Shown: piece after piece, positions 6,885-46,397 of the stretch
Position numbering within the stretch: position 1 is the first letter of the stretch
How the letters are laid out: each line of letters opens with the position of its first letter
Virus record (IMG/VR): IMGVR_UViG_3300034073_003340
Span: 1 to 64,000 of that record
DNA length: 64,000 nucleotides
Direction: 5' to 3' (one strand)
Position numbers and translations under genes: made by a program
The notes under the pieces: generated by a model
The model's input: only the letters and a program-made list of their open reading frames with translations
The model's database searches: none
What the model was told of the DNA's origin: nothing

Positions 6885-6927
6885 GGCGTCCCTCACACTT
6901 GGAGTTTAGCCTATTTAGCGGAAATCT

Positions 6928-7884: not shown

Positions 7885-8319
7885 TCACCTTTTACCAGCT
7901 TGTCTGTAAAGTTGGCGTTCAGTCATGATACGAAACTTTATGCCATTGGATTTACACCAATTATAGGCAGCTTCCCACTTGGCTTCATTTAGCGTGATGG
8001 CATCAATATCCTTTTGCGTTCGAGCAGCTTCTGGGATGCTCTGACTCAAAGGTTTGATCTCAATTATCTCAGCGTGCTTGGCACCAGTTTTGTCGGTGTA
8101 AAGTATAAAGAAGTCTGGGATATAATTGCGAATCTTTCCAGTGAACGGATCCTGATACTGTATCTTAAGAGACTCGCTTGCCCATTGTTCAACATAAGGA
8201 TGTTGGTCGCATAGATTCATAAAGGTCAATTCCCAAGCGGACCTATATGTGATAGGAAGAGTCCCAACGTATTTTTCTGGGTTCTTGGGTTCAAACGTTC
8301 CTTGATTATAAAACGCCAT
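7885..8319 (-). CDS. Head completion nuclease (T4 gp4-like)
   Basis: F-x-PKNPEKY, YRSAWE, WASE, YIPDF and IEIKP motifs. Confidence 0.88.
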   Translation of the reverse strand: MAFYNQGTFEPKNPEKYVGTLPITYRSAWELTFMNLCDQHPYVEQWASESLKIQYQDPFTGKIRNYIPDFFILYTDKTGAKHAEIIEIKPLSQSIPEAARTQKDIDAITLNEAKWEAAYNWCKSNGIKFRIMTERQLYRQAGKR

Positions 8320-9383
8320 TAGAATAGCTTTCCAGGTCTACCAAACAAGGCACCTTTTAAAAGACCTTGGACACCCTGTCTGGCCGCTCCAGTATTACCA
8401 GAGACGATGTTTTTTAAACTAGATGCGGCAGTCTTACCAATAGCAAGACCTCTATTGGCATCATAAGATCCTGCTATTTCGCTGATAATACGACCAGGAC
8501 TACCGAAGCCTTGGCCGGTTATACCACTCAAGAGATTTCTCTGTAAGGTCGCACCAATGGTATCATCTAAACTACGGGTTATAGCATTTGGAGTTGTCGC
8601 CAGACCAGGAGTAATATCTAGATTTGGTAGATCGTTTGGAACGTCCCAATATTGACCAAAATCCAAACCAGCATCCTCAGCAATTTCCTGTGTTATGGGT
8701 TCGGGGTCAGCGTAAACTATTCCCTCAAAATCAATAGACATCTGAATTTCGTTGGTAACGGCACCAACGCTATAATCAAAATCGTCTGGGTTGAAGCTGG
8801 AGATCTTTGGATTGATCAGATCAAATCGTTCCATTACACCATTGTAGAATTGATACACCGAGATATGACTAAAGAAATAGGCGTAGTTCTGCTCTACCAT
8901 TGGGGGTAGAAAACCCCAGCGACCCAGTTCAAAGGACTCGCCAGTTACGATATCATAGACCGTTGATCCACTTGAACCTGCACCGTATATCTTACTATCA
9001 CCATAATAATATTGGTAATATTCAACAAACATATTTCGCAGATCCTGCGAAATGGTATCATGAAATCTAACCTGGAGCGGCTCAAAGTCATGACCGGTTT
9101 GAACAATACGTTTACGATTATACTGATTCAGCGTCTCTTGGCGAAAGGTAACTTTGGGTCGATCAATATTCTTGACAACTAGTCCAATTCCTCTTTCCCA
9201 TCCACTACCACCAGTAGACTCCGGGCGATAGAACTTCATCCAAAAAAGGAATTTGTTCTTGGGAACATTGGCGAATCTAGTTCCGCCCAAACCAAAATTG
9301 TTTGAAGCGTGATGGCTGTCCCCCAACATGAGGGACAGCCCATTAGGATCAGAAGTCCTACCGCCTCTTGAAGTTTCAGTCAC
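8319..9383 (-). CDS. Tail tube-like protein (baseplate tube initiator/gp54-like)
   Basis: PKVTFRQETLNQYNRKRIVQT...F-x-P-x-x-V-x-FHD tube-fold motif, directly downstream of the tail tube gene. Confidence 0.6.
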   Translation of the reverse strand: MTETSRGGRTSDPNGLSLMLGDSHHASNNFGLGGTRFANVPKNKFLFWMKFYRPESTGGSGWERGIGLVVKNIDRPKVTFRQETLNQYNRKRIVQTGHDFEPLQVRFHDTISQDLRNMFVEYYQYYYGDSKIYGAGSSGSTVYDIVTGESFELGRWGFLPPMVEQNYAYFFSHISVYQFYNGVMERFDLINPKISSFNPDDFDYSVGAVTNEIQMSIDFEGIVYADPEPITQEIAEDAGLDFGQYWDVPNDLPNLDITPGLATTPNAITRSLDDTIGATLQRNLLSGITGQGFGSPGRIISEIAGSYDANRGLAIGKTAASSLKNIVSGNTGAARQGVQGLLKGALFGRPGKLF

Positions 9384-9393
9384 TGACTAAACC

Positions 9394-10232
9394 TTATAGA
9401 CGGTTGCCAGGAATCTGCTCAGGAAGCGCGGTCATTAGACCGTTTGCCTGCGTTGCGTTATCAAAACGAACAGTCAACGTAATGGTCTGGAAACCGGATT
9501 CAGCATAGTCCAGATCCATGTAGTCAACGTTCTGTAGGAAGCAACCTTCAAGCGTCCATGTCTCAACGACAGTGTCATTGCCACCGTCCATGGTCTCAAT
9601 AATGGTTACAAACTTATAGTTGATACCAGAAGCAAAAGCCGTCTGCTCAAAGTGGTTGAGCTGCTTCTGTAACTGGTGCCCAACAAGCTTAGCAACGTTG
9701 TTGGTCAAGTCATCCTTGAGAACAATCTGCAAGGTCTCCCACGTATGCTTACCAGCATAGTAGGCGGTGCTGTTGTAACTATGAACAGGAACTTCTTCGT
9801 GGGCAATTTTTGGTTTGCCAACGCTCTGAACCTGCTGGGTGAAGTCGAGACCACCTGCGATTGGACCAAAGTTAACCACGCGGACGCGGAAGCGATACTT
9901 ATACTTGAGTTGGAGAAGACCACCGCGGCCCTGTCCGCCTCCAAGTGGAACCATTTGTATTCAATCAGTGTCGTTAATACTGATCCGCCTTACGGCTGCT
10001 CATTGTTACCAATGAGATTAGACTATATCATGACCCACTTGGGGCCCCACCCGTTTCAGCCCACTTGGGCCTACGACCTTTCGGTCTAGTCGTTGAACGT
10101 TCCGGTTCATAACTCCGGCTTCGCTGCTGATTGTCCCTGAGGGATTTTCCAGCAATTAGAGTGGTTTTTCGACCAGGATCACTCCTGGAAGCAGCTATTC
10201 CTTTAACCGAACTTAGATAGAGTTTCTGCCAT
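9394..10232 (-). CDS. Tail tube protein (T4 gp19-like), spliced: exon 1 10232-10206, exon 2 9951-9394 (194 aa)
   Basis: GGAGG RBS plus ATG GCA GAA ACT CTA TCT AAG TTC GGT (MAETLSKFG) joins in frame to GTT CCA CTT (VPLGGGQGRGGLLQ...KYRFRV). Also YYAGKHTW and W-x-L-x-GCF tube motifs. Confidence 0.92.
9952..10205 (-). mobile_element. Group I intron (subgroup IA-like, 254 nt, no internal ORF)
   Basis: P AATTGCTGGAAA, Q AATCAGCAG, R GTTCAACGACTA, S ATGATATAGTCT. Exon-terminal U pairs with G in P1 (CGGU|UA with UAGCUG). P10 GGAAU pairs with exon 2 GUUCC. P3 CCACTC/GGGTGG. P7.1 GACC-GAAA-GGTC and P7.2 GCCC-AAGT-GGGC. Terminal omega-G. Confidence 0.95.
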
Positions 10233-10329: not shown

Positions 10330-11142
10330 ATGTATTACGTTTATACCTTGTGTGATCCAAGAAGAGATGACCAACCATTTTATGTTGGCAAGGGATCACG
10401 AGACCGATGTAAGTCCCATCTATATGAAACGTATCAGAATACGAGCAATCGCCGCAAGTGGTGTAAGATAGCTGCTATTAAGAAGTCCGGGCTTGAAGTT
10501 ACTATCAAAAAGATTCAAGAGGATTTATCAGAGTCTGATGCTTATGATCTGGAAGAAGAATTAATCAAGAAGTACGGTAGAATAGGCTATGAATCCAATG
10601 GCATCTTAACCAACATATGTGAATCTTCTCGTCCTCCCTCTGCTAAAGGAAGAATGATATCAGATGAAACTCGTAGAAAGCATAGTGAACGCCAAAAAGG
10701 TCCACTAAATCATAGATATGGTATCAAGATGTCAGATGAGGAAAAGGAATATAGGCGTCGATTTAATTTAGAAAATGGTATCAGACCGCCTGATAGGACA
10801 GGGGTTTCCCACACTGAAGAGACCAAAATCAAGATGAGTCTAGCCAGCAAAGGTAAGAAGAAAAGCCCTGAGCATTGTAAGGCGATTGGTGAAGCTCGTC
10901 GTGGAAAATCTCTAGGACCATGTTCCAATGAGAAAGCCAAGAAAATAGCAGAATCACAGTATAGAAACTATCAGCTTACTAGCCCTGAAGGTAAAAATTA
11001 CACAGTGAACACAAGTAAACTAAGAGAGATGATAAAGATATTCAATTGGTCATATGGGGGAATCATGGCAGCTAAAATTGCTGGGAGAAAATATCGAGGT
11101 TGGACTATTTTAGATCTGGGACGATCTAAAATACCAGATTAA
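10330..11142 (+). CDS. Free-standing GIY-YIG-type homing endonuclease with NUMOD3-like repeats
   Basis: YYVY...PFYVGKG...R...H catalytic module and basic GxxxSxETxxKxS repeats. Opposite strand to its neighbours. Confidence 0.85.
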   Translation: MYYVYTLCDPRRDDQPFYVGKGSRDRCKSHLYETYQNTSNRRKWCKIAAIKKSGLEVTIKKIQEDLSESDAYDLEEELIKKYGRIGYESNGILTNICESSRPPSAKGRMISDETRRKHSERQKGPLNHRYGIKMSDEEKEYRRRFNLENGIRPPDRTGVSHTEETKIKMSLASKGKKKSPEHCKAIGEARRGKSLGPCSNEKAKKIAESQYRNYQLTSPEGKNYTVNTSKLREMIKIFNWSYGGIMAAKIAGRKYRGWTILDLGRSKIPD

Positions 11143-12051
11143 CTAGTATTCCTGAACCGCGACGATTTTAGCCTTAGTGGTCAGATATTCCCAAAGAGGA
11201 TCATCAGTTGGTTTCCCAGCCCAATAATTTTCTGCGGCTGTTTTGAGTTCCTGGCTATCATAGTCGTGTCCGTCGTCTACCAGGGAAGATATAAGACTAG
11301 ACCAGTTCATATCATGCTTATAAACAGGCCCTAGAGGTTGTAAGGTGAACACGTATTCAGTTGAGCCTCCCGCCGAATCCAAATCATCTTCATTACTAAC
11401 CATGAAAACCGCATCACGGTGAGAAAGCTTGTCGGCTGGTCGATAGCGTTCTAGAACTTCAAAAAACGGCACATATCCCCAGTCACGATCATAATCACTT
11501 CCTCGACCGGTTAGGATCGTTCCTACGTCTAATTCATTGACGCTGGAGTGATAATAGAGACGAGTATTCAAAGATTCTTCCAGTTGTCCTGGAGTGATAG
11601 ATTTCATAAATTTCAGGAAAGTGGAGGTAGAAATGTTCCAATCTGTGGAATTTTCAACCATTCTTACCAAATTAGGCGCATACAGATCAAAATTAAAAAC
11701 CGCAGACTCAAAATCGTTGTATTCTCGTTCTATCCAATCAGCAATAGAATCATTGGTGACTTTTCCGTCGCCGTCAAACAGAGAACCCCTTACATAAACC
11801 GCAACGTGATAGACTCTAGCATCCGAAGTCAGAATATCTTCTGGCTCAGCTTCATCTCCATCTCCATATACGTCCTCACAGATTACTACTATTCTGGGGA
11901 CCTCACCTTGCTCTTCGAGAATCGTAGCCAAAGCCAAGGCAAATGTCCCACAGTTTCCTGAGAATAGATTACCACTACCAAAATGAGATTGGCAAGAATT
12001 TATCAAACCAACAATATCCAATTTGGATTCAGAGATTTCAGACCAGCGCAT
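11143..12051 (-). CDS. Two-domain protein: papain-like Cys-His-Asp domain plus Arr-like ADP-ribosyltransferase-like domain; probable head-packaged effector
   Basis: NCGTFALAL / YHVAVY / FDGDG in the N-half. LYYHSS...L-x-VGTIL...AVFMV...YW-x-G...WEYL in the C-half. Each domain is preceded by an xxES site. Late promoter upstream. Confidence 0.55.
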   Translation of the reverse strand: MRWSEISESKLDIVGLINSCQSHFGSGNLFSGNCGTFALALATILEEQGEVPRIVVICEDVYGDGDEAEPEDILTSDARVYHVAVYVRGSLFDGDGKVTNDSIADWIEREYNDFESAVFNFDLYAPNLVRMVENSTDWNISTSTFLKFMKSITPGQLEESLNTRLYYHSSVNELDVGTILTGRGSDYDRDWGYVPFFEVLERYRPADKLSHRDAVFMVSNEDDLDSAGGSTEYVFTLQPLGPVYKHDMNWSSLISSLVDDGHDYDSQELKTAAENYWAGKPTDDPLWEYLTTKAKIVAVQEY

Positions 12052-12064
12052 ACATATATTTAGT

Positions 12065-12100: not shown

Positions 12101-12105
12101 TTGCC

Positions 12106-12150
12106 TTACTTGCTGAAGAAGTCCGACATGATCTGCGGAGCCGCAGTGTC
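12106..12150 (-). pseudogene. Stranded duplicate of the last 14 codons of Ro60 (DTAAPQIMSDFFSK*)
   Basis: Translates to DTAAPQIMSDFFSK*, versus the current Ro60 end SQDAPQVMSDFFSK*. Same length and recoded codons. Confidence 0.92.
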
Positions 12151-12464
12151 AATAGGCTTTAATCATTTTACCATTTATAGCCATATTTTCAGTTAAGCAA
12201 AAATCTGGATTATTTTTCTGAATCTCTTTCTTCAATTCATCAATTTGCTTCTCTAGAAGCTTGATATGATTTTTCAAAAAAGTGATATCTGATTGTTTTG
12301 CTGGATCGTTTAGCATAGTTTCTCCATTTATATTCTTTGTTTTAGCATAGCAAATATAAATGTATTTTTCAATAAATAGGAGTGGTAAGCCAGAGGGGTC
12401 GGATCCTCTGGCAACCTAGCTTGGAGCAAACAGGCTGTCCCACTTGATATTTATTGGAGCTCAT

Positions 12465-13337
12465 ATGAGTCAGATCTGCGACTATGGCTGTGGTCGTCTT
12501 GCCACAACATTCAAACCCTATTCTAAACGCTGGTGCTGTGAAACATCTCAGAACAAGTGTCCTGCAATCAAGACCAAGCAGAATACCCAACAGGCGATCG
12601 AAGCCCGTAAGCAAGGTGTGAGGAGCAAATACGGGGTAGATAACATCTCACAAATACAAGCCGTTAAGGACAAGAAGATCGCAACTTGCTTGAGCAATTA
12701 CGGTGTTGAGAATCCCAATCAATCTTCAATCATCCGTCAAAAAGCTGAAGCCACTAACCTAGATAGGTATGGTGGAACAAATCCTCGTCATTGTGACAAA
12801 GTTAAGGAGAAAGGACGTCAGACTTGTCTTGAACGTTACGGAGTAGATAACGGAAGCAAGACTGAGCAAGCCAAAACAAAAATATCATCACACAAGCTAG
12901 GTCTCACTGATCAGGAAAAGCTACAGATAGCCAAGAGAAGAGAAGAAACTTGTTTAGAACGCTACGGAGTGAGGAATGTATCTCAGAACGAGAAGATCCA
13001 TTACTCTAAGCTAGTCACGGCCAGGGCCAAAACCTACACCTTTCCCTCAGGACAAATAGCAACGGTACAAGGATATGAACCACAGGTTTTAGATTCGTTA
13101 TTAAAAGCCGGTATTAGAGAGCAGGATATCAAAGTTGGACGTCGCAACGTGCCAACTATTCGCTATCACTATGAGGGCAAGGACAGATTCTATTTTCCTG
13201 ATATCTATATAGCCAGTCACAACTGGATCATTGAGGTCAAGAGTCTTTTTACATTCCGACTTGAACGCGAGAAGAACATGGCAAAAAGAGTAGCCACCAA
13301 AGCTGATGGCTACTCCTTTAGTTTCGTGATACGGTGA
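12465..13337 (+). CDS. Free-standing PD-(D/E)xK endonuclease with N-terminal Cys cluster and five YGVxN repeats (homing-type)
   Basis: CDYGCG...CC...CP; KYGVDN/NYGVEN/RYGGTN/RYGVDN/RYGVRN; YFPDIYI...IIEVKS. GGAG RBS before ATG 12465. Confidence 0.75.
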   Translation: MSQICDYGCGRLATTFKPYSKRWCCETSQNKCPAIKTKQNTQQAIEARKQGVRSKYGVDNISQIQAVKDKKIATCLSNYGVENPNQSSIIRQKAEATNLDRYGGTNPRHCDKVKEKGRQTCLERYGVDNGSKTEQAKTKISSHKLGLTDQEKLQIAKRREETCLERYGVRNVSQNEKIHYSKLVTARAKTYTFPSGQIATVQGYEPQVLDSLLKAGIREQDIKVGRRNVPTIRYHYEGKDRFYFPDIYIASHNWIIEVKSLFTFRLEREKNMAKRVATKADGYSFSFVIR

Positions 13338-15080
13338 TTACTTCGAGAAGAAATCGCTCATCACCTGGGGAGCATCCTGGCTAAAGCCAACTACGTCCAA
13401 CATACCAGCGTCCTTGGGGTCCGCAATGGTACAGCTGGTCGCAGTCATACCAACCACAACAGACTTAGCAGGGATGCCAGTCTTCTGTCGGTAAGTCTTC
13501 AGAGCCTGAGAAGGAGCCTGACGACCCGCATAGGTCTCGTTGTCCGTGTAGACAGCGAAGTTCTCCACGGGCAGCTTGTTATCAAGCGCCCACTCAAAGG
13601 GTAGCGAGCAGTCCGTGTTACCGAACGGCAGGCCCGAGATCGTGTTGATCACGTCATCCAGTCGCTGACGCGGACTGATCTTCAGGATCGACACCGGACC
13701 AGCATCCTTGACGTTGGCGTTCATGCGACCTCCATAGCCGTAACCATAGCCGCTACGACCACTGCCACCAGTGAATCCAATGAACTCATAAGAGTTCTCG
13801 ACATTCGCCGTGATCAACGCCATAGCCGCCGAAGCGTCACGAGCAGTTAGTCCCGGAATGTTGCCGATGGCAGCACTGCCCATGGACCCCGACACGTCAA
13901 GAGCTAGCAGCGTATTCTTGCCGGTCGGGGCCACATTGCCAAACGAGGCATAAAATGCCTGGTCGAGCGAGTCTACAACGCCGCGAACGACGTTCCAGGA
14001 CAGACTACCCTTGAAACCACGACCCTGACCGTAGGTCTTCATCGCAGCAAGGATAGCAATTGGGTGAACACGAGCCTTGCGAAGAGCCTCACCATCGGAA
14101 AGCTTGGCCTTGACCAGCTTCTCGGCGGCAGACATCGGAGTCAGAAGACCAACACTTGACATCTTGCCCAGGTTACGAATCATCGCAGTCAGCGACATGT
14201 TGGTCAGCAAAGCCTCCCAAACATTGGCATCGTTAAGGAACTGAGTGGGAATCGCCTCACGAGGAAGGTTGTGATCCACAATCAGCTGGATGATCTCCTT
14301 GGCAGAAGTTGCCTTCTTTGCCGCCTCAAATGCGAGAATCTGAGGGTGGAGAACACCAGACACGTCAGAACGGGACAGGCGAACCTCGCTTTCAAGATTT
14401 GCCGAGCCACGAACGTAGTCCGTAGCACCAACATTCGACATTCCACCAACCATCCAACGCAGGACAGCATCACGCGCAACATCGTCCGTCTTGGGGTGAC
14501 CCAGACGAAGCATGTCACGGTGCGACCATCCATCGCGCTGCTGATACTTGATCGCCTGGTTAGCCAGCCGGTCAAGTGGCATCTCTAGATACCAGTTACC
14601 TACTGCTCGACGTAGAGCGCGCCCCCAACCGCGAACGCCGTCCACAAAGGCAGCAAAGTGGAACAGATGGGTTCCAATCCGAGCGACCTTGGGTAGAGCG
14701 TCAAGAGCAGCCTTACGAGTTGCCTCGCTGTCAGCTGCCGATGCTAGAGCCAGAACGAATAGAGCAGGGTCGTTCTTGGGAGCGCGGCCAGAGTCACTGA
14801 TCTCTACCACACGATTTACAACGCGGATGCCATCCTCGTCAATTAGACGCAGGACGTTCTGAGCATTGGACTTGGTCAGCTCGCGCTCACCCACATAGTA
14901 GGTTCCACCCTCGGTTCCGAGGATCAGGAAGCGATCAAGCTGATCCCATGGAGAAACCACGAAGGTGAATCCACCGGCGTTATTCTTGGCCATTTCCGAC
15001 TCACGGCCCGGAATGGGCTGAGTCTGCGGCGTCTGCTTGGAAGCAATGGCACCCATCAGGACGTTCTTGGAATTACTCAT
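13338..15080 (-). CDS. rsr: Ro60/TROVE-vWA RNA-binding protein (Rsr)
   Basis: NNAGGFTF, LDRFLILGTEGGTYY, IKYQQRDGWSHRD, ALDVSGSM (MIDAS), VYTDNET and GMLDVVGF. GAGGAG RBS before ATG 15080. Confidence 0.95.
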   Translation of the reverse strand: MSNSKNVLMGAIASKQTPQTQPIPGRESEMAKNNAGGFTFVVSPWDQLDRFLILGTEGGTYYVGERELTKSNAQNVLRLIDEDGIRVVNRVVEISDSGRAPKNDPALFVLALASAADSEATRKAALDALPKVARIGTHLFHFAAFVDGVRGWGRALRRAVGNWYLEMPLDRLANQAIKYQQRDGWSHRDMLRLGHPKTDDVARDAVLRWMVGGMSNVGATDYVRGSANLESEVRLSRSDVSGVLHPQILAFEAAKKATSAKEIIQLIVDHNLPREAIPTQFLNDANVWEALLTNMSLTAMIRNLGKMSSVGLLTPMSAAEKLVKAKLSDGEALRKARVHPIAILAAMKTYGQGRGFKGSLSWNVVRGVVDSLDQAFYASFGNVAPTGKNTLLALDVSGSMGSAAIGNIPGLTARDASAAMALITANVENSYEFIGFTGGSGRSGYGYGYGGRMNANVKDAGPVSILKISPRQRLDDVINTISGLPFGNTDCSLPFEWALDNKLPVENFAVYTDNETYAGRQAPSQALKTYRQKTGIPAKSVVVGMTATSCTIADPKDAGMLDVVGFSQDAPQVMSDFFSK

Positions 15081-15097
15081 GATCTGTACTCCTCTTT

Positions 15098-15252
15098 TCG
15101 GCTCGTGAAACCCACGAGCAAGGTTGGCCTCTGACATCAAGGCCGGTAGTTCGATCTAGGGAGTGGGGTGACGGCCACTCGGCTCACAGCTTACGCTGTG
15201 ATTGAGAAACGGACGGTTTTCTATAGAAACACAAAGCGGACGGGCTTTGTGA
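15098..15252 (-). ncRNA. Structured RNA immediately upstream of rsr (leader or Y-RNA-like candidate)
   Basis: Six consecutive hairpins in about 155 nt. Three have CCGUC-containing loops and one has a GUAA tetraloop. Confidence 0.5.
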
Positions 15253-15259
15253 TAATGCC

Positions 15260-15562
15260 TTATAACTGGGCTTGGTTTGCCTCGTCAAGAGTCTTTTTTA
15301 GAACTTCTAGCACTTCTGCCTTGCTTCCAAAAATACCACTCATTGAGACTGGATTTGTAATAGCAACATGGATTACCGTCGGACTAAAAAATCTGATGAT
15401 TCCATAGCCTTCAAATCGACCGTTTCCAGGCTTGCGATTGTTCCATCTGGTTCGATACTTACCGCCCACACTGTAGACGTCATATCTATAATTGTTTTCG
15501 ATGCCCAGCAAATCTGAGACATCCTGGTAGAACTTTTCTACCTCACTGATTTCCTTTTCCAT
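15260..15562 (-). CDS. Phage hypothetical protein
   Basis: 100 aa ORF (RWNNRKPGNGRF motif) with TTGACA-N17-TTAAAT directly upstream. Confidence 0.7.
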   Translation of the reverse strand: MEKEISEVEKFYQDVSDLLGIENNYRYDVYSVGGKYRTRWNNRKPGNGRFEGYGIIRFFSPTVIHVAITNPVSMSGIFGSKAEVLEVLKKTLDEANQAQL

Positions 15563-15604
15563 ACTCTATTTAAGCATAGATTTGGAATCTTGTCAACTCA
15601 ATGG

Positions 15605-16425
15605 TTGTCGGGTAGCACGAACTCTACCCGACGAGGCTCCACCACCATATAGGTATTGGATAAAAGTAAAGGTCTCGTTCGTGAGACCACCCCTGCGTCA
15701 TCAACAACATGGCACTTTGGACCGCAAGGTCCGAAGAGCAAGTAACGAGGTGGACCGGGCTAGTGTATTGAGATCGAAATCTTAATACCTATATCTCCCT
15801 AAGCAGACCGAAGCCTGTTTCCATGTTGTTGAGTCAGCGTGTTAGGTTACTTTCTAGTAAGATAACCCACCATCATCGGCTCTCGATCTATTTATTTGGG
15901 GGTCTCCGGAGACCGAAGTCTCCGGAGGGCAAGTTGACTAGGTCTTTCCAGCGCCAACTTGCGGGGCTTGATAAATCAGATACTTGGTCTGATCACACCT
16001 ACTGAGTCCTATGCCTTTCAGACCCAACGCGTCTAGGGGAAGTTACTCAAGGCCCCCATGTTTCCGATCAAGGTAGTTAAGGAGGAACCAAATCTAGGCC
16101 TTATGACCGAAGCCCGCCTATCCTCTTTATTCGTTTTAATAGCGTTGGTGACACTATTTAAACTACTAAACCTCACCGTCGCACGCTAGGATGAGGGTGA
16201 GGGGTGATCCTTCCCTCAACATAACTACCATGTGGGACCGAAATCCCAGATCACTAGGGACACTCGCAAGCGCCCCGTCGCACTTTACCAGGTCGATTCC
16301 TGGACTTTTGTTCTCCTCCGGTGCCGTCCGGCAGATACCTTTATGTGTCAGCACACACCCCAGTCGCCAAGAACAAAATATATGGGTTCAAGAGCCTAGG
16401 CTCCTCCGTGCCGTTTAACCGTTGT
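15605..16425 (-). ncRNA. Large structured non-coding region, possibly three tandem ~250-280 nt RNAs
   Basis: No credible ORF. Five UUCG-capped hairpins, G-U pairs that only work on the minus strand, a 12-bp and an 11-bp long-range helix in pseudoknot order, and internal TAAATA motifs at 16155-16160 and 15889-15894. Confidence 0.7.
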
Positions 16426-16464
16426 ATATTAGATCCTTTTGAATCGCAATATTCTATTCATGGA

Positions 16465-16492
16465 AATGGAGAGAGTTTTACCTCTCTCCATT
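16465..16492 (-). terminator. Hairpin terminator after tail sheath
   Basis: AATGGAGAGAG / CTCTCTCCATT 11-bp stem just after the sheath stop. Confidence 0.7.
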
Positions 16493-16495
16493 CTC

Positions 16496-18910
16496 TTAGT
16501 TAAACAGAGCGCCTAAATCATCACCGGTGGCAACAATGCGAACCGGAATATAGATGAATTCAATTGCCTGAACTGGCTGGATAGCAATATCTACCCATAG
16601 TTCCTGGCGATCAATTCGCTCTGGTGTGTTGTTGGTTTCATCACAAACCACAATGAAGTCGTAAAGACCACGTAGACCTACTAGATCTGCTAGAAAACGC
16701 TCAAAGGTCGTTCTCACAGAATCTCGAGTCTGGAAGTCGTTTGGTTCAAAGAGGAACGGCTTGCTGATGTTATCCAAGTTGTAACGTAGGTAATTGACCA
16801 AACGAGCAACGTTGATGCGATCAAGAGCTGTTTCTAGGCTGTGACGAGTCTTCTGCCCATATACCACCAAACCACGATTTGGAATAAACGCGATTGGGTT
16901 GATCTTATTGGAATACAGAATATCACGCTGACCAGGGTTCAAGATAGCAGCCTTGAATTCACCCTCATCATCAAGATATCCAACGCTAGAGGCATTGTTA
17001 ACAAGACCACGAGTGAAACCAGCAGGAGCCATCCAAGGGTAGCTGATGCTATCATTGTAAGCCAGAGTTCTAAGAGCAATCGTCGACGGTGGGACCATGA
17101 TCTCGTTACCATCAACATTGGTGCTCAGACCCCATGGATAATACATACCAACATATGGGTTGAAAGTGCTGACACCATTTTCAGTGTTACCATTTCCAGC
17201 ATTGTTGGCAAACTCTGTGATTGCCGCGCCAGTTGGCTTCAAGCGGATTGGAGTGTCACCTACAATAAATGCCACTTCCTTCATGTCCGTGTTCAAAGTA
17301 ACCATCTCATCGATTAGTTCAATGTAACCAGGAGCAGCCAGGAGGTTAAAGTAAACCGTTTCTGCACGGATGTCTTCATTTGCGGAAATCGTTGCCGCAA
17401 GCGAGCGGACAATCATCTGACGCTGCGCACGACGTCCAAAGAACGGAACACCATTTGTCTGGAAGCCAGAAACGTTTGACCACTTGCCTTCAGAAGCATT
17501 GTATTGCTTGACGTCGTTGGTAGACGCAGCAAGATCAAACAACTTCATACCTTCAGCATAGTTGAGTGACTCGGTAGTTTCAGCTTCACCAAACGCAATA
17601 CCGTCAATTGGGTCAATGTTGTTTTCAACATTAATAACCTTCCACAAGCCACCGGTTCGACGATACATCTTTGGATAATTTTCCAAATCCGAAGTATCAA
17701 CCCAAAGATCGTTTTCGACCAGTGGAGCACCAGTGGACTGAACCGTTGGTGCCGATCCCAGCAGGATCACACCGTTGGCATCAGTTGCTGGATAAACTGT
17801 GCGGTATGGACGCCATTCTCCGCCTTGGTTAACCTTGACGTTTACTACTAGATTCTGGTTATTGAACCAGAGAGTTCCATCATCGGCTGTGTTGGTTGGC
17901 TCAGTCGCACTAGCTTCTTCCCCAAGAGCTTCCCAAACATCAGTATTTTCGTTATAACGAAGGAACTCAAAAACCGCACGAGTATCTTCATAACTCAAGA
18001 ATACTGAACCAGCAACTCTAGTTAGAGTGTTGACCTTTGACAAGCTGTAGATAGGAACTAGGGTTTCTGCCCAAATGCCAGTTCCGGCATTATAGGTTTT
18101 TAGAAGCCAGGTCGCTGCCGCACTAATGCTGGTAATAACATCAGGGGTATTGAGAACTAGAACGTCGCCAATGTTTCCAGTAGCAGGACGGAAATTGTTG
18201 TATTTTAGTTCCAGAGAAGCCGAAGATCCTTCAGCAACCTTAGCTGTCTTCCATTCTGGTGTTCCTACAACAAACCATTCGTCGGCAATACGCTGATAAA
18301 GAACCTTCTTTGAATACAACACTACCATGGCAAAATCACCATTGGCAGAATCTACCAGAAGAGGAACTTTCTGTCCAGGAATGATTTCAGGAGCCGCGCT
18401 ATCAAGAGAAGACTCATCTTCTACGATCCAAAGATCGCGCTCAGTCCATTCACTACCAGTATATTCGTAAATACCCCAGGTATTGTTTTGCGTATCTAGC
18501 CAGTTCGTGCCATTGGTAGCTTCGGCACGAGGCTCAGAAGCCTGTGGCATCAGCTGCCCATAGTCGATCGCAGCACGAATGACAAACGCACGGTTAGCAA
18601 TACCAAGATACTGGTAAGCAGCATGAAGACCATACTCGTTTAGTTCGTAACCATGAACGGCAGAGCCATTTCTGGTGTAAAAAATTGGGTTGCCAAACGT
18701 CTGGAGGAGTTCGCGCTGGCTCGTGATAGGGTAGAGCTTGTTCGCGTTCTCGGGCAAGGTGCCTTCGGCCACGCCGCTACCCGAAGGCAGAGACTTGAAT
18801 TCGTGCGTGCCGATAATAATCAGCGGAACAGTGCCTTCACCAGCCGTTGCGTAGTTGGATTCGTCGGTTACGGTAACAGATGTACCGGGCGACACTAGAG
18901 GATATACCAT
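16496..18910 (-). CDS. Tail sheath protein (T4 gp18-like)
   Basis: LVSPGTSVTVTDES N-terminus; YPWMAPAGFTRG, INPI, RINVARL, FLFEPND and PVQAIEFIYIP. Confidence 0.95.
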   Translation of the reverse strand: MVYPLVSPGTSVTVTDESNYATAGEGTVPLIIIGTHEFKSLPSGSGVAEGTLPENANKLYPITSQRELLQTFGNPIFYTRNGSAVHGYELNEYGLHAAYQYLGIANRAFVIRAAIDYGQLMPQASEPRAEATNGTNWLDTQNNTWGIYEYTGSEWTERDLWIVEDESSLDSAAPEIIPGQKVPLLVDSANGDFAMVVLYSKKVLYQRIADEWFVVGTPEWKTAKVAEGSSASLELKYNNFRPATGNIGDVLVLNTPDVITSISAAATWLLKTYNAGTGIWAETLVPIYSLSKVNTLTRVAGSVFLSYEDTRAVFEFLRYNENTDVWEALGEEASATEPTNTADDGTLWFNNQNLVVNVKVNQGGEWRPYRTVYPATDANGVILLGSAPTVQSTGAPLVENDLWVDTSDLENYPKMYRRTGGLWKVINVENNIDPIDGIAFGEAETTESLNYAEGMKLFDLAASTNDVKQYNASEGKWSNVSGFQTNGVPFFGRRAQRQMIVRSLAATISANEDIRAETVYFNLLAAPGYIELIDEMVTLNTDMKEVAFIVGDTPIRLKPTGAAITEFANNAGNGNTENGVSTFNPYVGMYYPWGLSTNVDGNEIMVPPSTIALRTLAYNDSISYPWMAPAGFTRGLVNNASSVGYLDDEGEFKAAILNPGQRDILYSNKINPIAFIPNRGLVVYGQKTRHSLETALDRINVARLVNYLRYNLDNISKPFLFEPNDFQTRDSVRTTFERFLADLVGLRGLYDFIVVCDETNNTPERIDRQELWVDIAIQPVQAIEFIYIPVRIVATGDDLGALFN

Positions 18911-29802: not shown

Positions 29803-31116
29803 ATGGTCGATCTCGCAACTCGCGCCCACAATCACAACTGGCGCATGGATCCCATTATCAGGTCCCTATTGGACACTGATTTTTACAAGCTTATGATGGG
29901 CCAGTTCATTTTTGAACGTCATCCCAATCATATCATCACTTTTGGTCTCAAGAATCGAACCAAGACCTTTGTTCTTGCTGATCACATCAACATCAATGAT
30001 CTAACTGAGCAGCTTGATCATGTGAGATCTCTTCGATTCACTCCTCAGGAGTTGATCTGGCTCCAGGGCAATACATTCTATGGTCAAGAAAGAATCTTCA
30101 AGCCCGCATATATCAATTTCCTACGGACTTTGAAACTTCCTCCATATAGCATCGGGTTCAACGAGGATGGAGATTACTCCATCACCTTTACTGGGACTTG
30201 GGCCGAAGTGACCTTCTGGGAGATTTATTGTCTCTCAATTGTAAGCGAGCTCAAGACTCGTGCCGCACTTCGGACGCTCAGCAAGTTTGAACTTGATATT
30301 CTCTATTCAAATGCCAAGTCTAAGCTTTGGAAGAATTTGAAGAGGATTCGCAAAGCGGAAGTTCGTGGTCTATCGGATATGGGAACGCGTCGTAGACATA
30401 GTTTCCTCTATCAGGAATGGGCGGTGCTCGCTGCGGCTGAAGCCTTGGACCAAGGGTTTGCTGGAACCAGCAACGCATATCTTGCTATGAAGTATGGCTT
30501 TGAAGCTATCGGAACTAATGCTCATGAGATGCCCATGGTATTAGCTGCTATCAAAGCAAGTCAGGGCGGCACCGATGAAGAAATCCGCCAAACCCAGTAT
30601 GATTTTCTACAGGGATGGCAGAATGGATACTCCGGAAACGTGTTGGTGGCTTTGCCTGATACTTTTGGAACAACACAGTTTCTCAGGGACGCACCACAGT
30701 ATCTAAGCAATTGGCGTGGATTCCGTCCTGATAGCAAAAAGCCAGACGAGGCAACTGAAGAGCTTATTGCTTTTTGGAAGCGTATGGGTGTTGATCCTTT
30801 GAAGAAGCTGGTTCTTTATAGTGACGGACTGGATGTGGATGAAATTATTCGCATTTGGAATAAGTGGAACGGTATCGTCCAAATTGGTTTTGGATGGGGG
30901 ACCAACCTGACCAATGACTTCAGGGATTGTCACCCGCGCGGGGAAACTACGCTGGATCCACTATCACTGGTTTGTAAGGTAATTGAAGCCAATGGTCATC
31001 CGGCGGTCAAGCTGTCTGACAATTACTCTAAGGCCACTGGTGATAAGGCCGAAGTAGATCGCTATCGTAGAATTTTCGGTAGCGAAGGAATGAGCAACAT
31101 TGGAGTTGTGGTATAA
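29803..31116 (+). CDS. pncB: Nicotinate phosphoribosyltransferase
   Basis: SLLDTDFYKL, DMGTRRRHSF, GTSN, GTNAHE (phospho-His), LPDTFGT, RPDS, SDGLD, FGWGTNLTND and VKLSDN. Alphaproteobacterial-style N-terminus. Confidence 0.95.
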   Translation: MVDLATRAHNHNWRMDPIIRSLLDTDFYKLMMGQFIFERHPNHIITFGLKNRTKTFVLADHININDLTEQLDHVRSLRFTPQELIWLQGNTFYGQERIFKPAYINFLRTLKLPPYSIGFNEDGDYSITFTGTWAEVTFWEIYCLSIVSELKTRAALRTLSKFELDILYSNAKSKLWKNLKRIRKAEVRGLSDMGTRRRHSFLYQEWAVLAAAEALDQGFAGTSNAYLAMKYGFEAIGTNAHEMPMVLAAIKASQGGTDEEIRQTQYDFLQGWQNGYSGNVLVALPDTFGTTQFLRDAPQYLSNWRGFRPDSKKPDEATEELIAFWKRMGVDPLKKLVLYSDGLDVDEIIRIWNKWNGIVQIGFGWGTNLTNDFRDCHPRGETTLDPLSLVCKVIEANGHPAVKLSDNYSKATGDKAEVDRYRRIFGSEGMSNIGVVV

Positions 31117-40135: not shown

Positions 40136-41359
40136 TTAGAGGAATTTCAGGTTGCCTGTGTTGATTCCAACCAGACCTAGGTAATCCGCAGCGTTACCCA
40201 GCGACGATGCGCTGTTGGTGAGCTCCAGGTAACCATAACGGGTCATGAACGAAACCACTGGCTCGAAAGTCTGTGGATCGATAACAACGCCCGAAGAGGT
40301 CAGTGGGACGTATGGGCAGTAGTATGCCGCAGCGTCGATTTCACCCTGGCCCTTGTAACCAACAAGAACAGGAGTGTCGTCCTGTGCGTACTGGTCAACG
40401 TAGACGCGCAGCGAGTTGTTCAGCGTACCAACATACTTGGTGTTGGTTGGTGCTTCAAACACGCCTTCGGTGGTGCGAGCGAACGCCGAAGTAGTAGCAG
40501 ACTGCAGGATGGTCAGAGCGGTTGGGCTCACAACAATCCAGTTAGCTGCGCCACGACGGGTGCGCTGTGCGATCAGGTTAGCCTGACGGTTGATCAGAAC
40601 CGAAAGAGCGGCGTGCTCGTCACCGACGAACGTTGCGGTGCCCGAAACGGAACCCTGATCGTAAATGGCAGTAGCAGCACCTGGAAGCATACGCAGCGAG
40701 TTCAGGATTTCCTGGTCGATTTCTGCGGTGATTTCCTGGGCTAGAGCAGCCATGATTTCAGCTTCAATGTCGATGCCCTGCTGAGCCTGTGCGTCCTGCT
40801 GAGCCTCGAAGGTCCAACGAGCGCTCAGACGACGGGTCTTAGCTTCGACGGTTTCCTTCAGGATCTGGATCGACAGACGGTTACCTGGGCGACCTTCAAG
40901 AGCTGCGGTTGAAGCAGCACGTGGGTTACCTGAGTTAGCTTCACCGTTACCCGAATATGCCTTAGCAATATCGAATGGGCTTAGTGCTTCTGCGCCAGCG
41001 GTCACACCAGCAGCGTTGTCCGCATAGCGAACGCGCAGAGTGTGGATCTGAGCAACAGGACCAGTCATTGGCTGAACACCAATGATTTCGTTAGCAATAA
41101 CGGTTGGCATAACGCGACGCAGAACTGGAAGGATAACCTTGTTCATTGTTGCGACGTTACCAGCAGCGGTGCCACCAGCGGACGCGGTTTCCATCAGAGG
41201 GTTACGACGCATTAGATCCTGGCGAGTGTTCTCAAGAACAGTCTCCATTACCTTCTGCTTGTTGGGGTTTGGCGAGCCATCCATGTTGACCTGCAGGTCG
41301 CGACCCTCGCAGAGAGCCTCCTTGGTAGCCTTCCAATTGCTTTCAAAAAGATTAGCCAT
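40136..41359 (-). CDS. Major capsid protein (T4 gp23-like)
   Basis: LP-x-LRRVMP-x-x-IANEI-x-GVQPMTGP, KTRRL-x-ARWT-x-EA-x-QD, EI-x-AEIDQE and FMTRYG. Confidence 0.97.
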   Translation of the reverse strand: MANLFESNWKATKEALCEGRDLQVNMDGSPNPNKQKVMETVLENTRQDLMRRNPLMETASAGGTAAGNVATMNKVILPVLRRVMPTVIANEIIGVQPMTGPVAQIHTLRVRYADNAAGVTAGAEALSPFDIAKAYSGNGEANSGNPRAASTAALEGRPGNRLSIQILKETVEAKTRRLSARWTFEAQQDAQAQQGIDIEAEIMAALAQEITAEIDQEILNSLRMLPGAATAIYDQGSVSGTATFVGDEHAALSVLINRQANLIAQRTRRGAANWIVVSPTALTILQSATTSAFARTTEGVFEAPTNTKYVGTLNNSLRVYVDQYAQDDTPVLVGYKGQGEIDAAAYYCPYVPLTSSGVVIDPQTFEPVVSFMTRYGYLELTNSASSLGNAADYLGLVGINTGNLKFL

Positions 41360-41373
41360 TGTAAAGATTCTCC

Positions 41374-42783
41374 TTATTCTTCAATTCCAGCCAGTCGGCG
41401 AAGCTCTGCAATTTCGGAAGTCGACTTTGCAGGGGCATCCTCCGCGCGGGCAGATTCAGCAAGTGGGTTGACGCGGTTGCCAGTTACGGCCACCGTCTTC
41501 TTAGGTTCGGCAGCAGTCTCAGACAGCGTGCGACGACCCTGGTTTGCGCTCCTCATGCCCTCGTTGAGGACAGTTGGAAGGTACTTTTGGAAGGCTTCTT
41601 TGAGCTTATCCGTTTTCACGGTATCAAGAAGTTCTTCCATCACGTTCCTCTTCTCCTTACTTAGTGGGGAGAGAAGTTCGTTCTTGATCTGAATTCGAGC
41701 AGCACGCTCTTCAGCTAGCTTGGCCTTGCGGGCGGCTAGCGTGATTTGCTCGTTCTTCTCGTTCAGAATCTGGTTAGCAGCTTCTAGCTGGCTCTTGCTT
41801 TCGTTAAGCTGCGCTTGTAGCTTACGAACTTCAGAACCTTCGCTGAGGTAGCTGGTCATGAACTCGGCCGAGAAAGCTTCAAACAGTCGGCGACCGAACA
41901 TATTGTTGCGGGCTTCCTGGATGTCTTCCTTGAGCTGGGTCAGTTCGCTGCGAATCTGAGCGTCGATGGTCGATTCAACTAGCTTGCTTGCGCGAGCAAT
42001 GAATGCCTTCTTGGTCTCATCTAGCTTTGCCTTAGACTCAGCAATCAAACGAACCTTGGCTTCAACAAGAGCATTCTTGTCTTCTTCCAGTTCCTTGATT
42101 TCCTTGTTCAGGTTTTCGAGAACAAAGTTCTCGAGTTTGTTAATACGGGCAGCGGTCTGCTCGTTCATCGAAATGCGGTGCTCACGAAGCTTCTTCGCAT
42201 CAGCGACGCGTTGCTCAGCAAGTGCCTTTTCCTGTGCCTTAACCGAGCCAATCTCTTCAGATAGCTTGGTCATGACAAACTGTTCGATGCGAGAAGTATG
42301 CTCGGCTAGCTTGGCATCATAAGAAGCCTTGGCTTCCGAGATTTCCTTTGCCAGCTTGACACGCTGTTCCTTCATTAGAGCGTGATCTTCTGCGATGCCC
42401 TTTAGCTCTTCAGCCAACTGGGACATAACAAACTGCTCAAGCATCTTAATATGCTCAGCAGTCTTAGCCTTGTAGGACGCACGAGCTTCCTTGATGGCCA
42501 CTGTTAGATTAGCGCGCTCTTCATTTAGTGCCTTGGTCGCAGCAACCGACTCAGCCGCATACTGCTTAACAGCATCGGTGAGCATGTTGTCCATTGCTTC
42601 AACAAGGTTTCCCTTGTCTGCTTCAAAGCGAACCGAAAACTCTTCGCGGACCTGTTCTTCAACTTCCTCACGGATAGAAGAACGGACCTCGTCAAGCTTT
42701 GCGTTCCAGGCTTCCTCGAGTGCGGTTTTAGTGTCTTCATTTAGAAGACCCGACTCCAGGAGTGAATTTAGTCCATTATCCAT
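41374..42783 (-). CDS. Prohead scaffold/core protein (T4 gp22-like)
   Basis: Long coiled coil between protease and capsid; GRRLFEAFSAEF and C-terminal LRRLAGI. Confidence 0.85.
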   Translation of the reverse strand: MDNGLNSLLESGLLNEDTKTALEEAWNAKLDEVRSSIREEVEEQVREEFSVRFEADKGNLVEAMDNMLTDAVKQYAAESVAATKALNEERANLTVAIKEARASYKAKTAEHIKMLEQFVMSQLAEELKGIAEDHALMKEQRVKLAKEISEAKASYDAKLAEHTSRIEQFVMTKLSEEIGSVKAQEKALAEQRVADAKKLREHRISMNEQTAARINKLENFVLENLNKEIKELEEDKNALVEAKVRLIAESKAKLDETKKAFIARASKLVESTIDAQIRSELTQLKEDIQEARNNMFGRRLFEAFSAEFMTSYLSEGSEVRKLQAQLNESKSQLEAANQILNEKNEQITLAARKAKLAEERAARIQIKNELLSPLSKEKRNVMEELLDTVKTDKLKEAFQKYLPTVLNEGMRSANQGRRTLSETAAEPKKTVAVTGNRVNPLAESARAEDAPAKSTSEIAELRRLAGIEE

Positions 42784-42794
42784 GAAACTTCTCC

Positions 42795-43433
42795 TTAGGC
42801 TTTGAGGTTGTGGATCCAGTTCAAGAGCTCCTTTGCGAGGTGCCCTTGTGCCTTTGGATCATGCTTCACGGCATGTGCCAGATCTTCAATGACCGCACCA
42901 CGACGACGCATGTTTAGCGCCTCGTAGACTGCCTTGGGGTAAGCCTCTGGAGCCGATGGACGTGCCACAATATCAACAGTAACAATTTCAAAATCTGAAA
43001 CGTTACCGTGATCGTCCACGTTACCGGAACCACGAGAACTAACACCAAGCTTCACACCATTCTCAAGAAGGGTGCGAACGATGTTGCCCATTGGAGTTGG
43101 GAGGATTTTCAGTTTACCCATACCATTTGGACCGTCCATATACATCTCGGTGATCATATGAGATACACGGTCGATATTGATGTTCAGTTCCTCAGGGTGA
43201 TCAGCTTCACCTAAAACACTCTCGCCTCTACGTAGGGTGTCATTGATACTATCAACAGCCATACGAATTTCGCTAACTGGATAGATTCTCTGGTTATGGT
43301 TCTTGGTACCGCCCTGGACGAAAATACCGCGCATAAACAAGTCCTTGGGCTTGCCATCTACGCCACTTGCGCCCTCTTCAACGACGCACTTGGCTTCGTC
43401 AAAGTTCATTCTTTCGGTGAGAACCAATGCCAT
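42795..43433 (-). CDS. Prohead protease (T4 gp21-like)
   Basis: N-x-N-x-RIYP, GEADHP, RVSH, LGVSSRG-x-G and DIVA-x-PSAP. Confidence 0.95.
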   Translation of the reverse strand: MALVLTERMNFDEAKCVVEEGASGVDGKPKDLFMRGIFVQGGTKNHNQRIYPVSEIRMAVDSINDTLRRGESVLGEADHPEELNINIDRVSHMITEMYMDGPNGMGKLKILPTPMGNIVRTLLENGVKLGVSSRGSGNVDDHGNVSDFEIVTVDIVARPSAPEAYPKAVYEALNMRRRGAVIEDLAHAVKHDPKAQGHLAKELLNWIHNLKA

Positions 43434-43438
43434 GTTGC

Positions 43439-44662
43439 TTACTTCCTCTTGAAGTCGGAACCGCGTAGATCAGTTGCCTGACCAATTGGGCTCTTTGGCG
43501 AATCGGAACCGAAACCATCCTTGGAGTTCAGCTTTGCCGACTTATCGCCTTCTTTGCTGACCTTTGTCTGGCCATCAGTTGCCTTCTTAACCTGATTCTT
43601 CAGTAGAGGACGTGCCTTGACTTCTGGAGCCGCTTCACGCTCATGACCTTCGTGATGATCGCTGTGGATTTCCACAGCCTTACCACCAACGCGGGCATCT
43701 GCGTCGTGCTCTGGAAGTGGGCTCTTGTCGTTAACAGCAACCTTCGCACCGTCAGCGCCAATTTCCTTACCACCGTTGAGGTTTGGATCCTTTACAGGCT
43801 CTAGAGTCCATGACTCTTCGAGATCAGCAAAATCGTCTTCCGACTCAGTTACTACTGATTCATCCATTTCGTCTTCAGACTTTTCAAAAGAGATAAGAGC
43901 TAACGCCTTGCCATCACTGGCGTATGCCTGTGCCCAAGCATCTCCTTTATCAACTCCTAGACTTGCTGCGATTTGTTCGATGTTAGGAACAACGTCAACG
44001 CCTGGGTTGTAACCCTCGTCATCGCCATCTTCATCCTCATCCTCATCACCGTCAACATCAGGAATGTCTTCACTGTAAGGGATAATAGCAACAACGAAGT
44101 GATAGTAATCACTTTCATCACTATCTATGAATACACCGTTAGATGCCTGGGCTTTTGCGTAGAACTCATCAAAGTCACCCTTGACGCGGTCTTCATAATC
44201 CCACTGGTCATCATCCATACTTTCGACAACTGGTGTTTCTTCACCTTCTTCGTCAGTACCGGTGATTTCAGCAAATTCTGCCTTGAGGCGAGCCATAACG
44301 GCTTCGAGATCCTCAATGGTATCTGCAATTGTTTCTTCAGCTGGAAGCTCTTCGCCACCAACCATGTCTGCGTCCATATCAGCTGGCAGTTCTTCACTGT
44401 CAGCTTCTAGATCCGCATCAGTCTCTTCGCCTTCAGCTTCTTCTTCGGCGTCATCGCCTTCAGCTTCGCTGTAAAACTCTTCAGACTCGATTGCTTCCTG
44501 GTCATCTTCGATGTCCTGGGAAAGCGAATTGTCCTCACTCATAAGCTCTTCGTGGATCTGCTTGCTGCGCTCCACAAACCACTCATGAAGGAGACCAGCT
44601 GCCTCGTTCTGCTCCTCATTGACGAGCATTTCGAGCACCTTATTCAGGTCAACTGTCTTCAT
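43439..44662 (-). CDS. Acidic prohead core-like protein, paralog 1
   Basis: A-x-x-LLHEWFVE N-terminus and shared C-terminus (RVGG-x-AVEI...KSA-x-LN...SPI) with the upstream paralog. Confidence 0.6.
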   Translation of the reverse strand: MKTVDLNKVLEMLVNEEQNEAAGLLHEWFVERSKQIHEELMSEDNSLSQDIEDDQEAIESEEFYSEAEGDDAEEEAEGEETDADLEADSEELPADMDADMVGGEELPAEETIADTIEDLEAVMARLKAEFAEITGTDEEGEETPVVESMDDDQWDYEDRVKGDFDEFYAKAQASNGVFIDSDESDYYHFVVAIIPYSEDIPDVDGDEDEDEDGDDEGYNPGVDVVPNIEQIAASLGVDKGDAWAQAYASDGKALALISFEKSEDEMDESVVTESEDDFADLEESWTLEPVKDPNLNGGKEIGADGAKVAVNDKSPLPEHDADARVGGKAVEIHSDHHEGHEREAAPEVKARPLLKNQVKKATDGQTKVSKEGDKSAKLNSKDGFGSDSPKSPIGQATDLRGSDFKRK

Positions 44663-44704
44663 AGTTGCTCTCCTTGTTACATTGAACATCGCGTGGCTCT
44701 GTTC

Positions 44705-46290: not shown

Positions 46291-46397
46291 TTTTTCTCCT
46301 TCGCGAAAGGAATCAGAGTCAAGGCTCTGATATTCTTTTGTATTTACCGTAATGACAAACACCTTTGATGTTTGACAGGTGATCCTCGGCTGCTAAT

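Follow-up and report, generated by a model that had tools for sequence, protein, structure and literature searches.

Why would a phage place a gene for two fused enzyme-like domains between its tail-sheath and tail-tube genes? The question is raised by an open reading frame (ORF) in the first 64 kb of the IMG/VR virus record IMGVR_UViG_3300034073_003340. We refer to this stretch of 64,000 nucleotides as the window; the whole record measures 435,856 bp and has direct terminal repeats. The ORF, called here the fusion gene, lies on the - strand and encodes 302 amino acids that open with MRWSEISES, as a first-pass annotation of the DNA had described (coordinates of all features are given in Table 1). 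We postulate that it encodes a late-expressed, leader-tagged effector pair, in which a cysteine enzyme is fused to a small H-type ADP-ribosyltransferase (ART) of the BC2332/DUF2441-Arr group, and which would be packaged, cleaved and injected, as that annotation had inferred. Its observations were confirmed, and its interpretation is supported in part. We assign this reading a probability of about 0.5.

A conserved gene made of two mobile domains

The fusion gene has a syntenic ortholog of 303 amino acids with 57% identity (contig L003, 6001-6912). The gene order sheath, Ro60, fusion, GIY-YIG, tube is kept in three other contigs (four contigs in all), showing that the fusion gene is real and conserved. 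Word-based and exhaustive searches of metagenomic proteins retrieved 541 relatives (E<=1e-3), nearly all of which match either residues ~1-151 or residues ~160-302. Most of them are stand-alone proteins of 140-170 amino acids, and some are long fusions. The two-domain layout proposed in the first-pass annotation was thus borne out, and because homologs carry just one half, the boundary can be placed at about residues 151-165. Within the ortholog pair, the C-terminal halves are 78% identical and the N-terminal halves only 38%. Meanwhile, the N-terminal half of our protein displayed 59-66% identity to the domain that ends a 675-aa multidomain protein. Judging from these alignments, both observations indicate either domain shuffling or swapping, or fast evolution of the N-terminal half.

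Among the relatives, the domains are fused to ART-PolyVal, GNAT, NUDIX, NT5C, ParB_N, DUF5872, DUF6934 and DUF5661, and the stand-alone members neighbour genes for ART-PolyVal, SprT-like, Zeta-toxin-like, WYL and ADP-ribosylglycohydrolase proteins. This modular distribution of both domains resembles the repertoire of polyvalent proteins (PMC5512222). The fusion protein had no Pfam match even at E<=10, was assigned in PHROGs only to an unannotated family, and gave no significant match in a profile search against PDB sequences. Neither tblastn nor megablast matched the fusion gene in a phage genome collection.

The C-terminal domain displays an ADP-ribosyltransferase fold

Structure prediction of the two halves yielded the papain-like and ART folds that the first-pass annotation had anticipated. 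The AlphaFold model of the C-terminal domain (predicted local distance difference test, pLDDT, 94.1; 21-sequence alignment) contains the split beta-sheet of ARTs. Its best VIA-align match was BC2332 (PDB 2AUA, DUF2441; Z 11.2, root-mean-square deviation 3.3, 133 of 145 residues aligned), followed by the rifampin-ART Arr (Z 6.5). More than 40 other ARTs were matched as well, among them TreX, Scabin, the diphtheria, pertussis and cholera toxins, PARPs, Tpt1, DarT and RES. Foldseek agrees with the ART fold, and the ESM-Atlas neighbours were DUF2441 clusters and one cluster auto-named toxin-antitoxin protein. BC2332-like proteins constitute family d.166.1.6 of the SCOP ADP-ribosylation superfamily (PMC3000352), and both DUF2441 and Arr-ms are members of the Pfam ART clan (PMC7955679).

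The conserved positions of this domain are H168-x-S170 on strand 1, F216 on strand 2, H246-D247-x-N249-W250 after strand 4, N-Y276-W277-x-G, and W287-E288 at the start of strand 5, with H168 and E288 kept in at least 90% of 97 relatives. These include the Arr-like H...F...E residues described in the first-pass annotation. On strand 2, F216 takes the place of Tyr, and H211 stands just before it (four residues, by our count). ARTs display H-Y-[EDQ] and H-H-h active-site configurations (PMC7955679), and the arrangement found here, H-[F]-E, is closest to H-Y-[EDQ]. ADP-ribosyltransferase activity is likely. Either D247 or E288 may correspond to the catalytic Asp of Arr. Like BC2332/DUF2441 and Arr, the domain has a compact ART fold of ~140 amino acids, the strand-1 motif YHG[ST]..L.VG and an acidic residue on the catalytic strand. 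Unlike them, it has Phe for Tyr on strand 2, displays the extra conserved motifs HDxNW and NYWxG, and reaches neither Pfam model, that of Arr-ms (PF12120) included. Arr-ms did match 16 of the 97 relatives weakly (best E 1.5e-4, below the 25-bit cut-off), and the family profile aligned YHGS..L.VG to the HGT motif of three Arr structures (E ~0.6). Membership in the Alt/VIP2-type R-S-E clade was rejected, as strand 1 carries His, not Arg, and the cholera/pertussis-type matches reach only Z 3.4-4.4.

Could this domain instead be an RNA-end or small-molecule ART (KptA/Tpt1- or Arr-style) that works with Ro60/TROVE, the RNA-quality-control protein encoded next to it? Its fold comes closest to BC2332 and Arr, with Tpt1 also among the matches, and relatives are fused to the nucleotide-processing domains NUDIX and NT5C. 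Every orthologous locus has a Ro60 gene directly upstream, and KptA-Nudix fusions and RNA-repair ARTs have been described in jumbo phages (PMC9503650). However, the Tpt1 matches are weak (Z 3.9), and the conserved Glu of strand 5 fits H-Y-[EDQ] rather than H-H-h (PMC7955679). Moreover, the fusion gene has its own promoter motif, most homologs do not stand beside Ro60, and an Rfam scan of the vicinity gave no RNA except an intron. We consider a role in RNA or small-molecule modification improbable.

The N-terminal domain resembles papain/transglutaminase-like enzymes

The N-terminal domain was modelled with a pLDDT of 91.6 (27-sequence alignment). H82 and D93 are invariant across the 27 relatives and C34 is nearly so, being replaced by Tyr in one of them; G32, N33, G35, F37, Y81 and G96 are also invariant. 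In the model, C34 (within GNCGxFA) starts helix 34-47, while H82 (within YHV) and D93 are located on neighbouring strands. The top structural matches were protein-glutaminase (Z 6.9 and 6.2), arylamine N-acetyltransferase (6.0) and SseI (5.6), followed by the CPR cysteine protease CPR-C4 (5.3) and vasohibin (5.1). PeiW, SpvD, PMT-C3, LapG, AvrPphB, OspI, TecA, PNGase, TGM2 and NlpC/P60 scored lower. Nearly all of the top matches are papain/transglutaminase-like Cys-His-Asp enzymes.

By its modelled fold, this domain is a papain/transglutaminase-like enzyme of the protease, deamidase or acyl-transferase type. It shares with these enzymes the Cys at a helix N-terminus, the His and Asp on neighbouring strands and a size of ~150 amino acids, whereas its sequence similarity to them falls below family thresholds. 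The papain-like Cys/His/Asp domain suspected in the first-pass annotation is therefore supported by structure prediction, fold search and the conserved triad, with moderate scores. The Pfam family Phage_YunG-like (PF24591) matched 17 of the 27 relatives weakly (best E 5.8e-4), and did not match our protein at its 27-bit threshold. The ESM-Atlas neighbours of the domain carry YunG-like, Transglut_core3 and Gln_deamidase_2 annotations, and BFVD holds uncharacterised look-alikes in several jumbo phages.

A promoter-like motif abuts the start codon

The late promoter that the first-pass annotation had placed before the gene stood in part. The T4-type late promoter TATAAATA is not enriched in the genome (1 and 6 matches vs ~12 expected per strand), and we rejected it in favour of CTAAATA/ATAAATA. 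Across the whole genome, CTAAATA occurs in 27 upstream regions vs 2.4 expected (~11-fold) and ATAAATA in 20 vs 1.7 expected, so that the [CA]TAAATA class is 11-12-fold enriched. CTAAATA precedes mainly structural genes: those for the portal, a virion protein, the head-tail adaptor, the start of the tail tube, a sheath-like protein and three or four tail-fibre/tail proteins. Late expression is thus plausible. The motif also stands directly before the fusion gene, in the absence of a Shine-Dalgarno site, and the ortholog displays the same arrangement with a 4-nt spacer. From this abutting position, we infer that the mRNA is late and leaderless or nearly so.

Examples of the upstream motifs are found in the window at 6918, 10275 and 49238. 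A second motif class, GGTTGACA, was observed 34 times vs 6 expected in the whole genome, and is probably an early, sigma-70-type promoter.

A leader shared by unrelated proteins

Phage T4 packages and injects the ADP-ribosyltransferase Alt. Its prohead protease gp21 cuts after L/I-x-E, and Alt loses a 7-residue propeptide (PMC9026906). A 10-residue capsid-targeting sequence in IPIII, MKTYQEFIAE (PMC8442874), suffices for packaging (PMC9026906; PMC3012670; PMC8442874). The fusion protein begins with MRWSEISE, in which I6-S7-E8 fits the gp21 rule.

We searched every ATG-opened frame of the genome for the pattern MR[WYLFI]x[EQDK][ILVF], defining as abutting those frames with TAAATA 2-8 nt upstream. 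The leader was present in 7 of the 18 TAAATA-abutting frames, as opposed to 8 of the 4254 others (Fisher p = 4e-14). At least 12 genes of the genome carry the family MR[WYL]x[EQ][ILV]. The same leader type occurs in unrelated contigs, on nine neighbouring genes in L006 and three in L017, attached to unrelated enzymes (MRNFIDIVE, MRRYIDIIAE, MRHLINLFE, MRLNEIE and others), and several of these follow xTAAATA-N4-5-ATG. Many stand-alone relatives of both domains bear it as well. Five of the bearers have ordinary Shine-Dalgarno sites and codons differ between orthologs (e.g. R2 is CGC vs AGA), indicating that the leader is conserved at the protein level.

In one bearer, a 63-aa ORF, the segment TASSGATAAGAVAT that follows I-L-E almost repeats the N-arm of the capsid protein, where P-L-M-E57 is followed by TASAGGTAAGNVAT. 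This resemblance suggests that the two proteins have a protease site and an N-arm motif in common. By analogy with T4, the shared leader suggests capsid packaging and injection. Small leader-tagged genes also form a cluster at genome positions 311275-336777, interspersed with apparent tRNA genes.

A candidate cleavage site between the two domains

The LEES linker pointed out in the first-pass annotation was located at residues 157-160, inside the low-confidence junction between the domains. It fits the L/I-x-E rule, and the ortholog reads L-T-E/S at this site (the slash marks the candidate cut). In the family alignment, the linker aligns with the leaders of stand-alone C-domain proteins, such as MRYFELSE/S. 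The motif h-x-E[SAT] also lies 4-9 residues before YHGS inside other fusions. These alignments fit an origin of the fusion from two leader-tagged genes with the cleavage site retained, and make release of the two enzymes by the prohead protease plausible. The scaffold-like protein encoded beside this protease has 34 [LI]xE motifs (7.2 per 100 amino acids vs 1-2 in other head proteins), an abundance in keeping with a gp22-like substrate.

The prohead protease would not be needed for splitting if the N-terminal domain were a protease that processes itself and thereby releases the ART once the protein has been delivered or translated. Its papain-like fold has an intact triad, and both polyvalent proteins and toxins are known to feature autoprocessing peptidases (PMC5512222). 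On the other hand, the domain is mostly stand-alone or fused to partners other than ARTs, deamidases and transferases feature among its best structural matches no less than proteases, and the junction motif matches the leader/protease rule. We regard self-processing as unlikely.

Packaged and injected, or acting inside the infected cell?

Based on these findings, we propose the following sequence of events. The 8-residue leader would act like a T4 capsid-targeting sequence and take the fusion protein into the prohead core, where the prohead protease would remove it after I-S-E8 and probably separate the two enzymes at L-E-E159/S. Right as infection begins, the products would leave the virion together with the DNA and modify macromolecules of the host, the ART half using NAD+ to do so. 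ARTs encoded beside virion genes have been predicted to be packaged (PMC9503650), and we count the position of the fusion gene between sheath and tube in favour of packaging, in line with that prediction. Packaging and injection have likewise been proposed for polyvalent proteins, among whose modifying enzymes ARTs occur most often (PMC5512222; PMC9503650).

The same leader can be read in another way, with both enzymes unpackaged and acting only inside the already infected cell. The leader would then, for example, aid efficient translation of leaderless late mRNAs, or targeting to a membrane or an assembly site. The T4 proteins ModA and ModB act within the infected cell in this way. Most leader genes start next to the promoter motif, so that leader and leaderless initiation could be mechanistically coupled, and packaging itself is a prediction from sequence. 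However, the five genes with the leader behind ordinary Shine-Dalgarno sites, and its conservation by amino acid rather than codon, argue against this reading. The motif also recurs internally at the domain junctions of fusion proteins, and one leader runs into the capsid N-arm-like segment. Together, these observations make purely intracellular action of the enzymes rather unlikely.

Several points weigh against the packaged effector pair as well. The fold scores of the N-terminal domain are moderate (Z<=6.9) and its Foldseek match is weak (E 0.12); we base the fold assignment on how consistent the match list is and on the triad geometry. On the ART side, BC2332, which matches the fold best, is a protein without known function, and the Phe that replaces Tyr on strand 2 means that NAD+ use is something we infer. 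Three-residue cleavage motifs are common (the fusion protein has six [LI]xE), the specificity of the phage's protease is assumed from T4, and only some two thirds of the bearers have the second leader Glu. CTAAATA also precedes two non-structural genes, those of a ribonucleotide reductase and a ClpX-like protein. Packaging and late timing are predictions from sequence. The nearest cultured phages by major capsid protein are Sinorhizobium phage Phosso (87%), Agrobacterium phage Atu_ph07 (70%) and Pseudomonas phage PA5oct (67%). These three have neither domain and no MRWxEI start, and no cultured phage among those compared carries the gene. Judging by Phosso and Atu_ph07, the host is likely a soil alpha-proteobacterium.

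Comparison with known effector systems

Enzymes that are packaged and injected are the first weapons a phage turns on the defences of its host. To our knowledge, outside T4, N4 and phiKZ-like phages they are known mostly from predictions. The packaged effector pair postulated here is reminiscent of T4 Alt and the internal proteins IPI-III in several respects: a late gene beside virion genes with an ART as its predicted cargo, a short N-terminal leader ending in I-x-E that is common to unrelated proteins, and a gp21-type protease in the genome. It differs in that its ART is H-type (BC2332/Arr-like), while Alt/VIP2 is R-S-E, in that its leader is MRWSEISE instead of the IPIII sequence, and in that two enzymes are fused. 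Packaging has been demonstrated in T4 and is predicted here.

Polyvalent proteins (PMC5512222) likewise have several effector domains per polypeptide, drawn from a shuffled repertoire, and a predicted delivery with the DNA, and the domains studied here recur fused to ART-PolyVal, GNAT, ParB, NUDIX and similar partners. In contrast to them, our protein has two domains only and no MPTase, MuF or SNF2 anchor domain, and neither domain matches the Pfam families derived from that study (Iyer et al. 2017). These jumbo phages instead distribute most of the repertoire over separate genes, each tagged with a leader. A SprT-like gene was seen only as a neighbour, in another phage. The concept is thus already known from Alt, the internal proteins and the polyvalent proteins; the domain families, their fusion and the leader-plus-promoter tag extend it in new forms.

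More broadly, and with somewhat less than even confidence, we suggest that a group of jumbo phages with distant ties to T4 and to Atu_ph07 marks its injected effectors with a conserved N-terminal leader of 8-10 residues, MR[WL]xE[IL]..E, often together with a start-abutting late promoter (leaderless mRNAs). If so, the ejected proteome of such phages could be read directly from sequence. The set would comprise at least 12 proteins here, including the papain-like/ART fusion and further ART-like, GNAT-like, DUF6934 and 2H-like proteins, and the prohead protease would cut the fusion, making it a natural polyprotein. Leader and promoter would then make a simple tag for predicting the injected proteome of uncultured jumbo phages, and the leader would be a candidate portable capsid-targeting tag for a phage lineage infecting soil bacteria. 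Two domain families outside Pfam, the BC2332/Arr-group ART and the YunG-like cysteine enzyme, are placed in an effector context. At present, the value of these findings is that of a well-founded, testable hypothesis rather than a demonstrated mechanism.

Genomic context

The record sequence was found only in DNA runs of subsurface and soil metagenomes. The window carries a T4-like structural module on its - strand (Table 1).

Table 1. Features of the fusion gene, of the surrounding window and of other leader-bearing genes (genome positions are given for the latter)
Feature	Position	Strand	Details
Large terminase, 859 aa	1642-4221	-	LAGLIDADG/Hom_end insertion at residues ~275-350
Tube-like and tube proteins	8319-9954	-	
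Tail-tube ORF	9394-9954	-	
Group I intron	9999-10215	-	RF00028, 85 bits; between short ATG start at 10232 and tail-tube ORF
GIY-YIG homing endonuclease	10330-11142	+	tail-to-tail with fusion gene
Fusion gene, two-domain protein	11143-12051	-	302 aa + TAG stop; ORF, 57%-identical syntenic ortholog
C-domain, residues ~166-302	11146-11556	-	alignments, model, fold matches, weak Arr-ms matches
E288	11188-11190	-	
F216	11404-11406	-	
H168	11548-11550	-	
Interdomain linker, residues 152-165	11557-11598	-	low pLDDT at both model ends
L157-E-E159/S160	11572-11583	-	candidate prohead-protease site
N-domain, residues ~10-151	11599-12024	-	alignment, model, fold matches
D93	11773-11775	-	
H82	11806-11808	-	
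C34	11950-11952	-	
Leader MRWSEISE, codons 1-8	12028-12051	-	candidate capsid-targeting propeptide
CTAAATA promoter-like motif	12057-12063	-	5 nt (TATGT) before ATG of fusion gene
Relic copy of Ro60 3' end, 46 nt	12105-12150	-	in front of fusion gene; alignment vs 13338-13385
55-aa ORF	12149-12316	-	inserted between Ro60 and fusion gene
DUF7487 homing-endonuclease gene	12444-13337	+	inserted between Ro60 and fusion gene
Ro60/TROVE-vWA gene	13338-15140	-	between sheath and tube, upstream of fusion gene
Tail sheath	16496-18910	-	
NAMPT/NAPRTase-family gene, NAD+ salvage	29803-31116	+	PF04095, 158 bits; ~18 kb from fusion gene
Major capsid protein	40136-41359	-	
Scaffold-like protein	41374-42783	-	
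T4 gp21-type prohead protease	42795-43433	-	PF03420, 86.6 bits; phrog_207
Two unannotated ORFs adjoining protease	43439-44689, 44827-46362	-	common LHEWFVE segment
Portal	47465-49204	-	
Leader bearer	start 12051		papain-like/ART fusion
Leader bearer	start 311682		GNAT-like protein
Leader bearer	start 312863		227-aa protein, LYRG...SxS pattern, R-S-E-like
Leader bearer	start 318692		ART-PolyVal-like protein, E 1e-5
Leader bearer	start 320753		protein starting ..VLYHAT
Leader bearer	start 336073		DUF6934 protein
Leader bearer	start 366216 (365803-366216)		137-aa protein, two HxT motifs, 2H-phosphoesterase-like
Leader bearer	start 411369 (411178-411369)	-	63-aa ORF, MRWSEI start; TASSGATAAGAVAT follows MRWSEIVGKPILE

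The insertion in the terminase is an intein, and the two ORFs adjoining the protease may be prohead core proteins. From exons inspected singly, the tail-tube gene looks intron-split, with the GIY-YIG gene apparently divergent beside it. The short ATG start has AGGAG and the CTAAATA motif on its 5' side.

In the relatives, the 3' end of Ro60 is identical to the 46-nt relic in front of the fusion gene, whereas in the functional Ro60 end the same residues are specified by other codons. In sequence, this looks like a relic left by the insertion of a homing-endonuclease cassette (12149-13337), which would have brought a recoded, cleavage-resistant Ro60 end. A partner Y-like RNA for Ro60 was not found, with zero Rfam matches in the 1.3-kb gap upstream of this gene (15141-16495). 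The sole ORF of this gap has 100 amino acids and a TAAATA-abutting start.

The functional tie that the first-pass annotation proposed between the ART of the fusion and NAD+ salvage, represented here by the NAMPT/NAPRTase-family gene, is speculation. Scans of the whole genome for the Macro and ART-PolyVal families gave no matches. Despite this blank genome scan, one leader-bearing ORF, listed in Table 1, did match ART-PolyVal when scanned as a protein.

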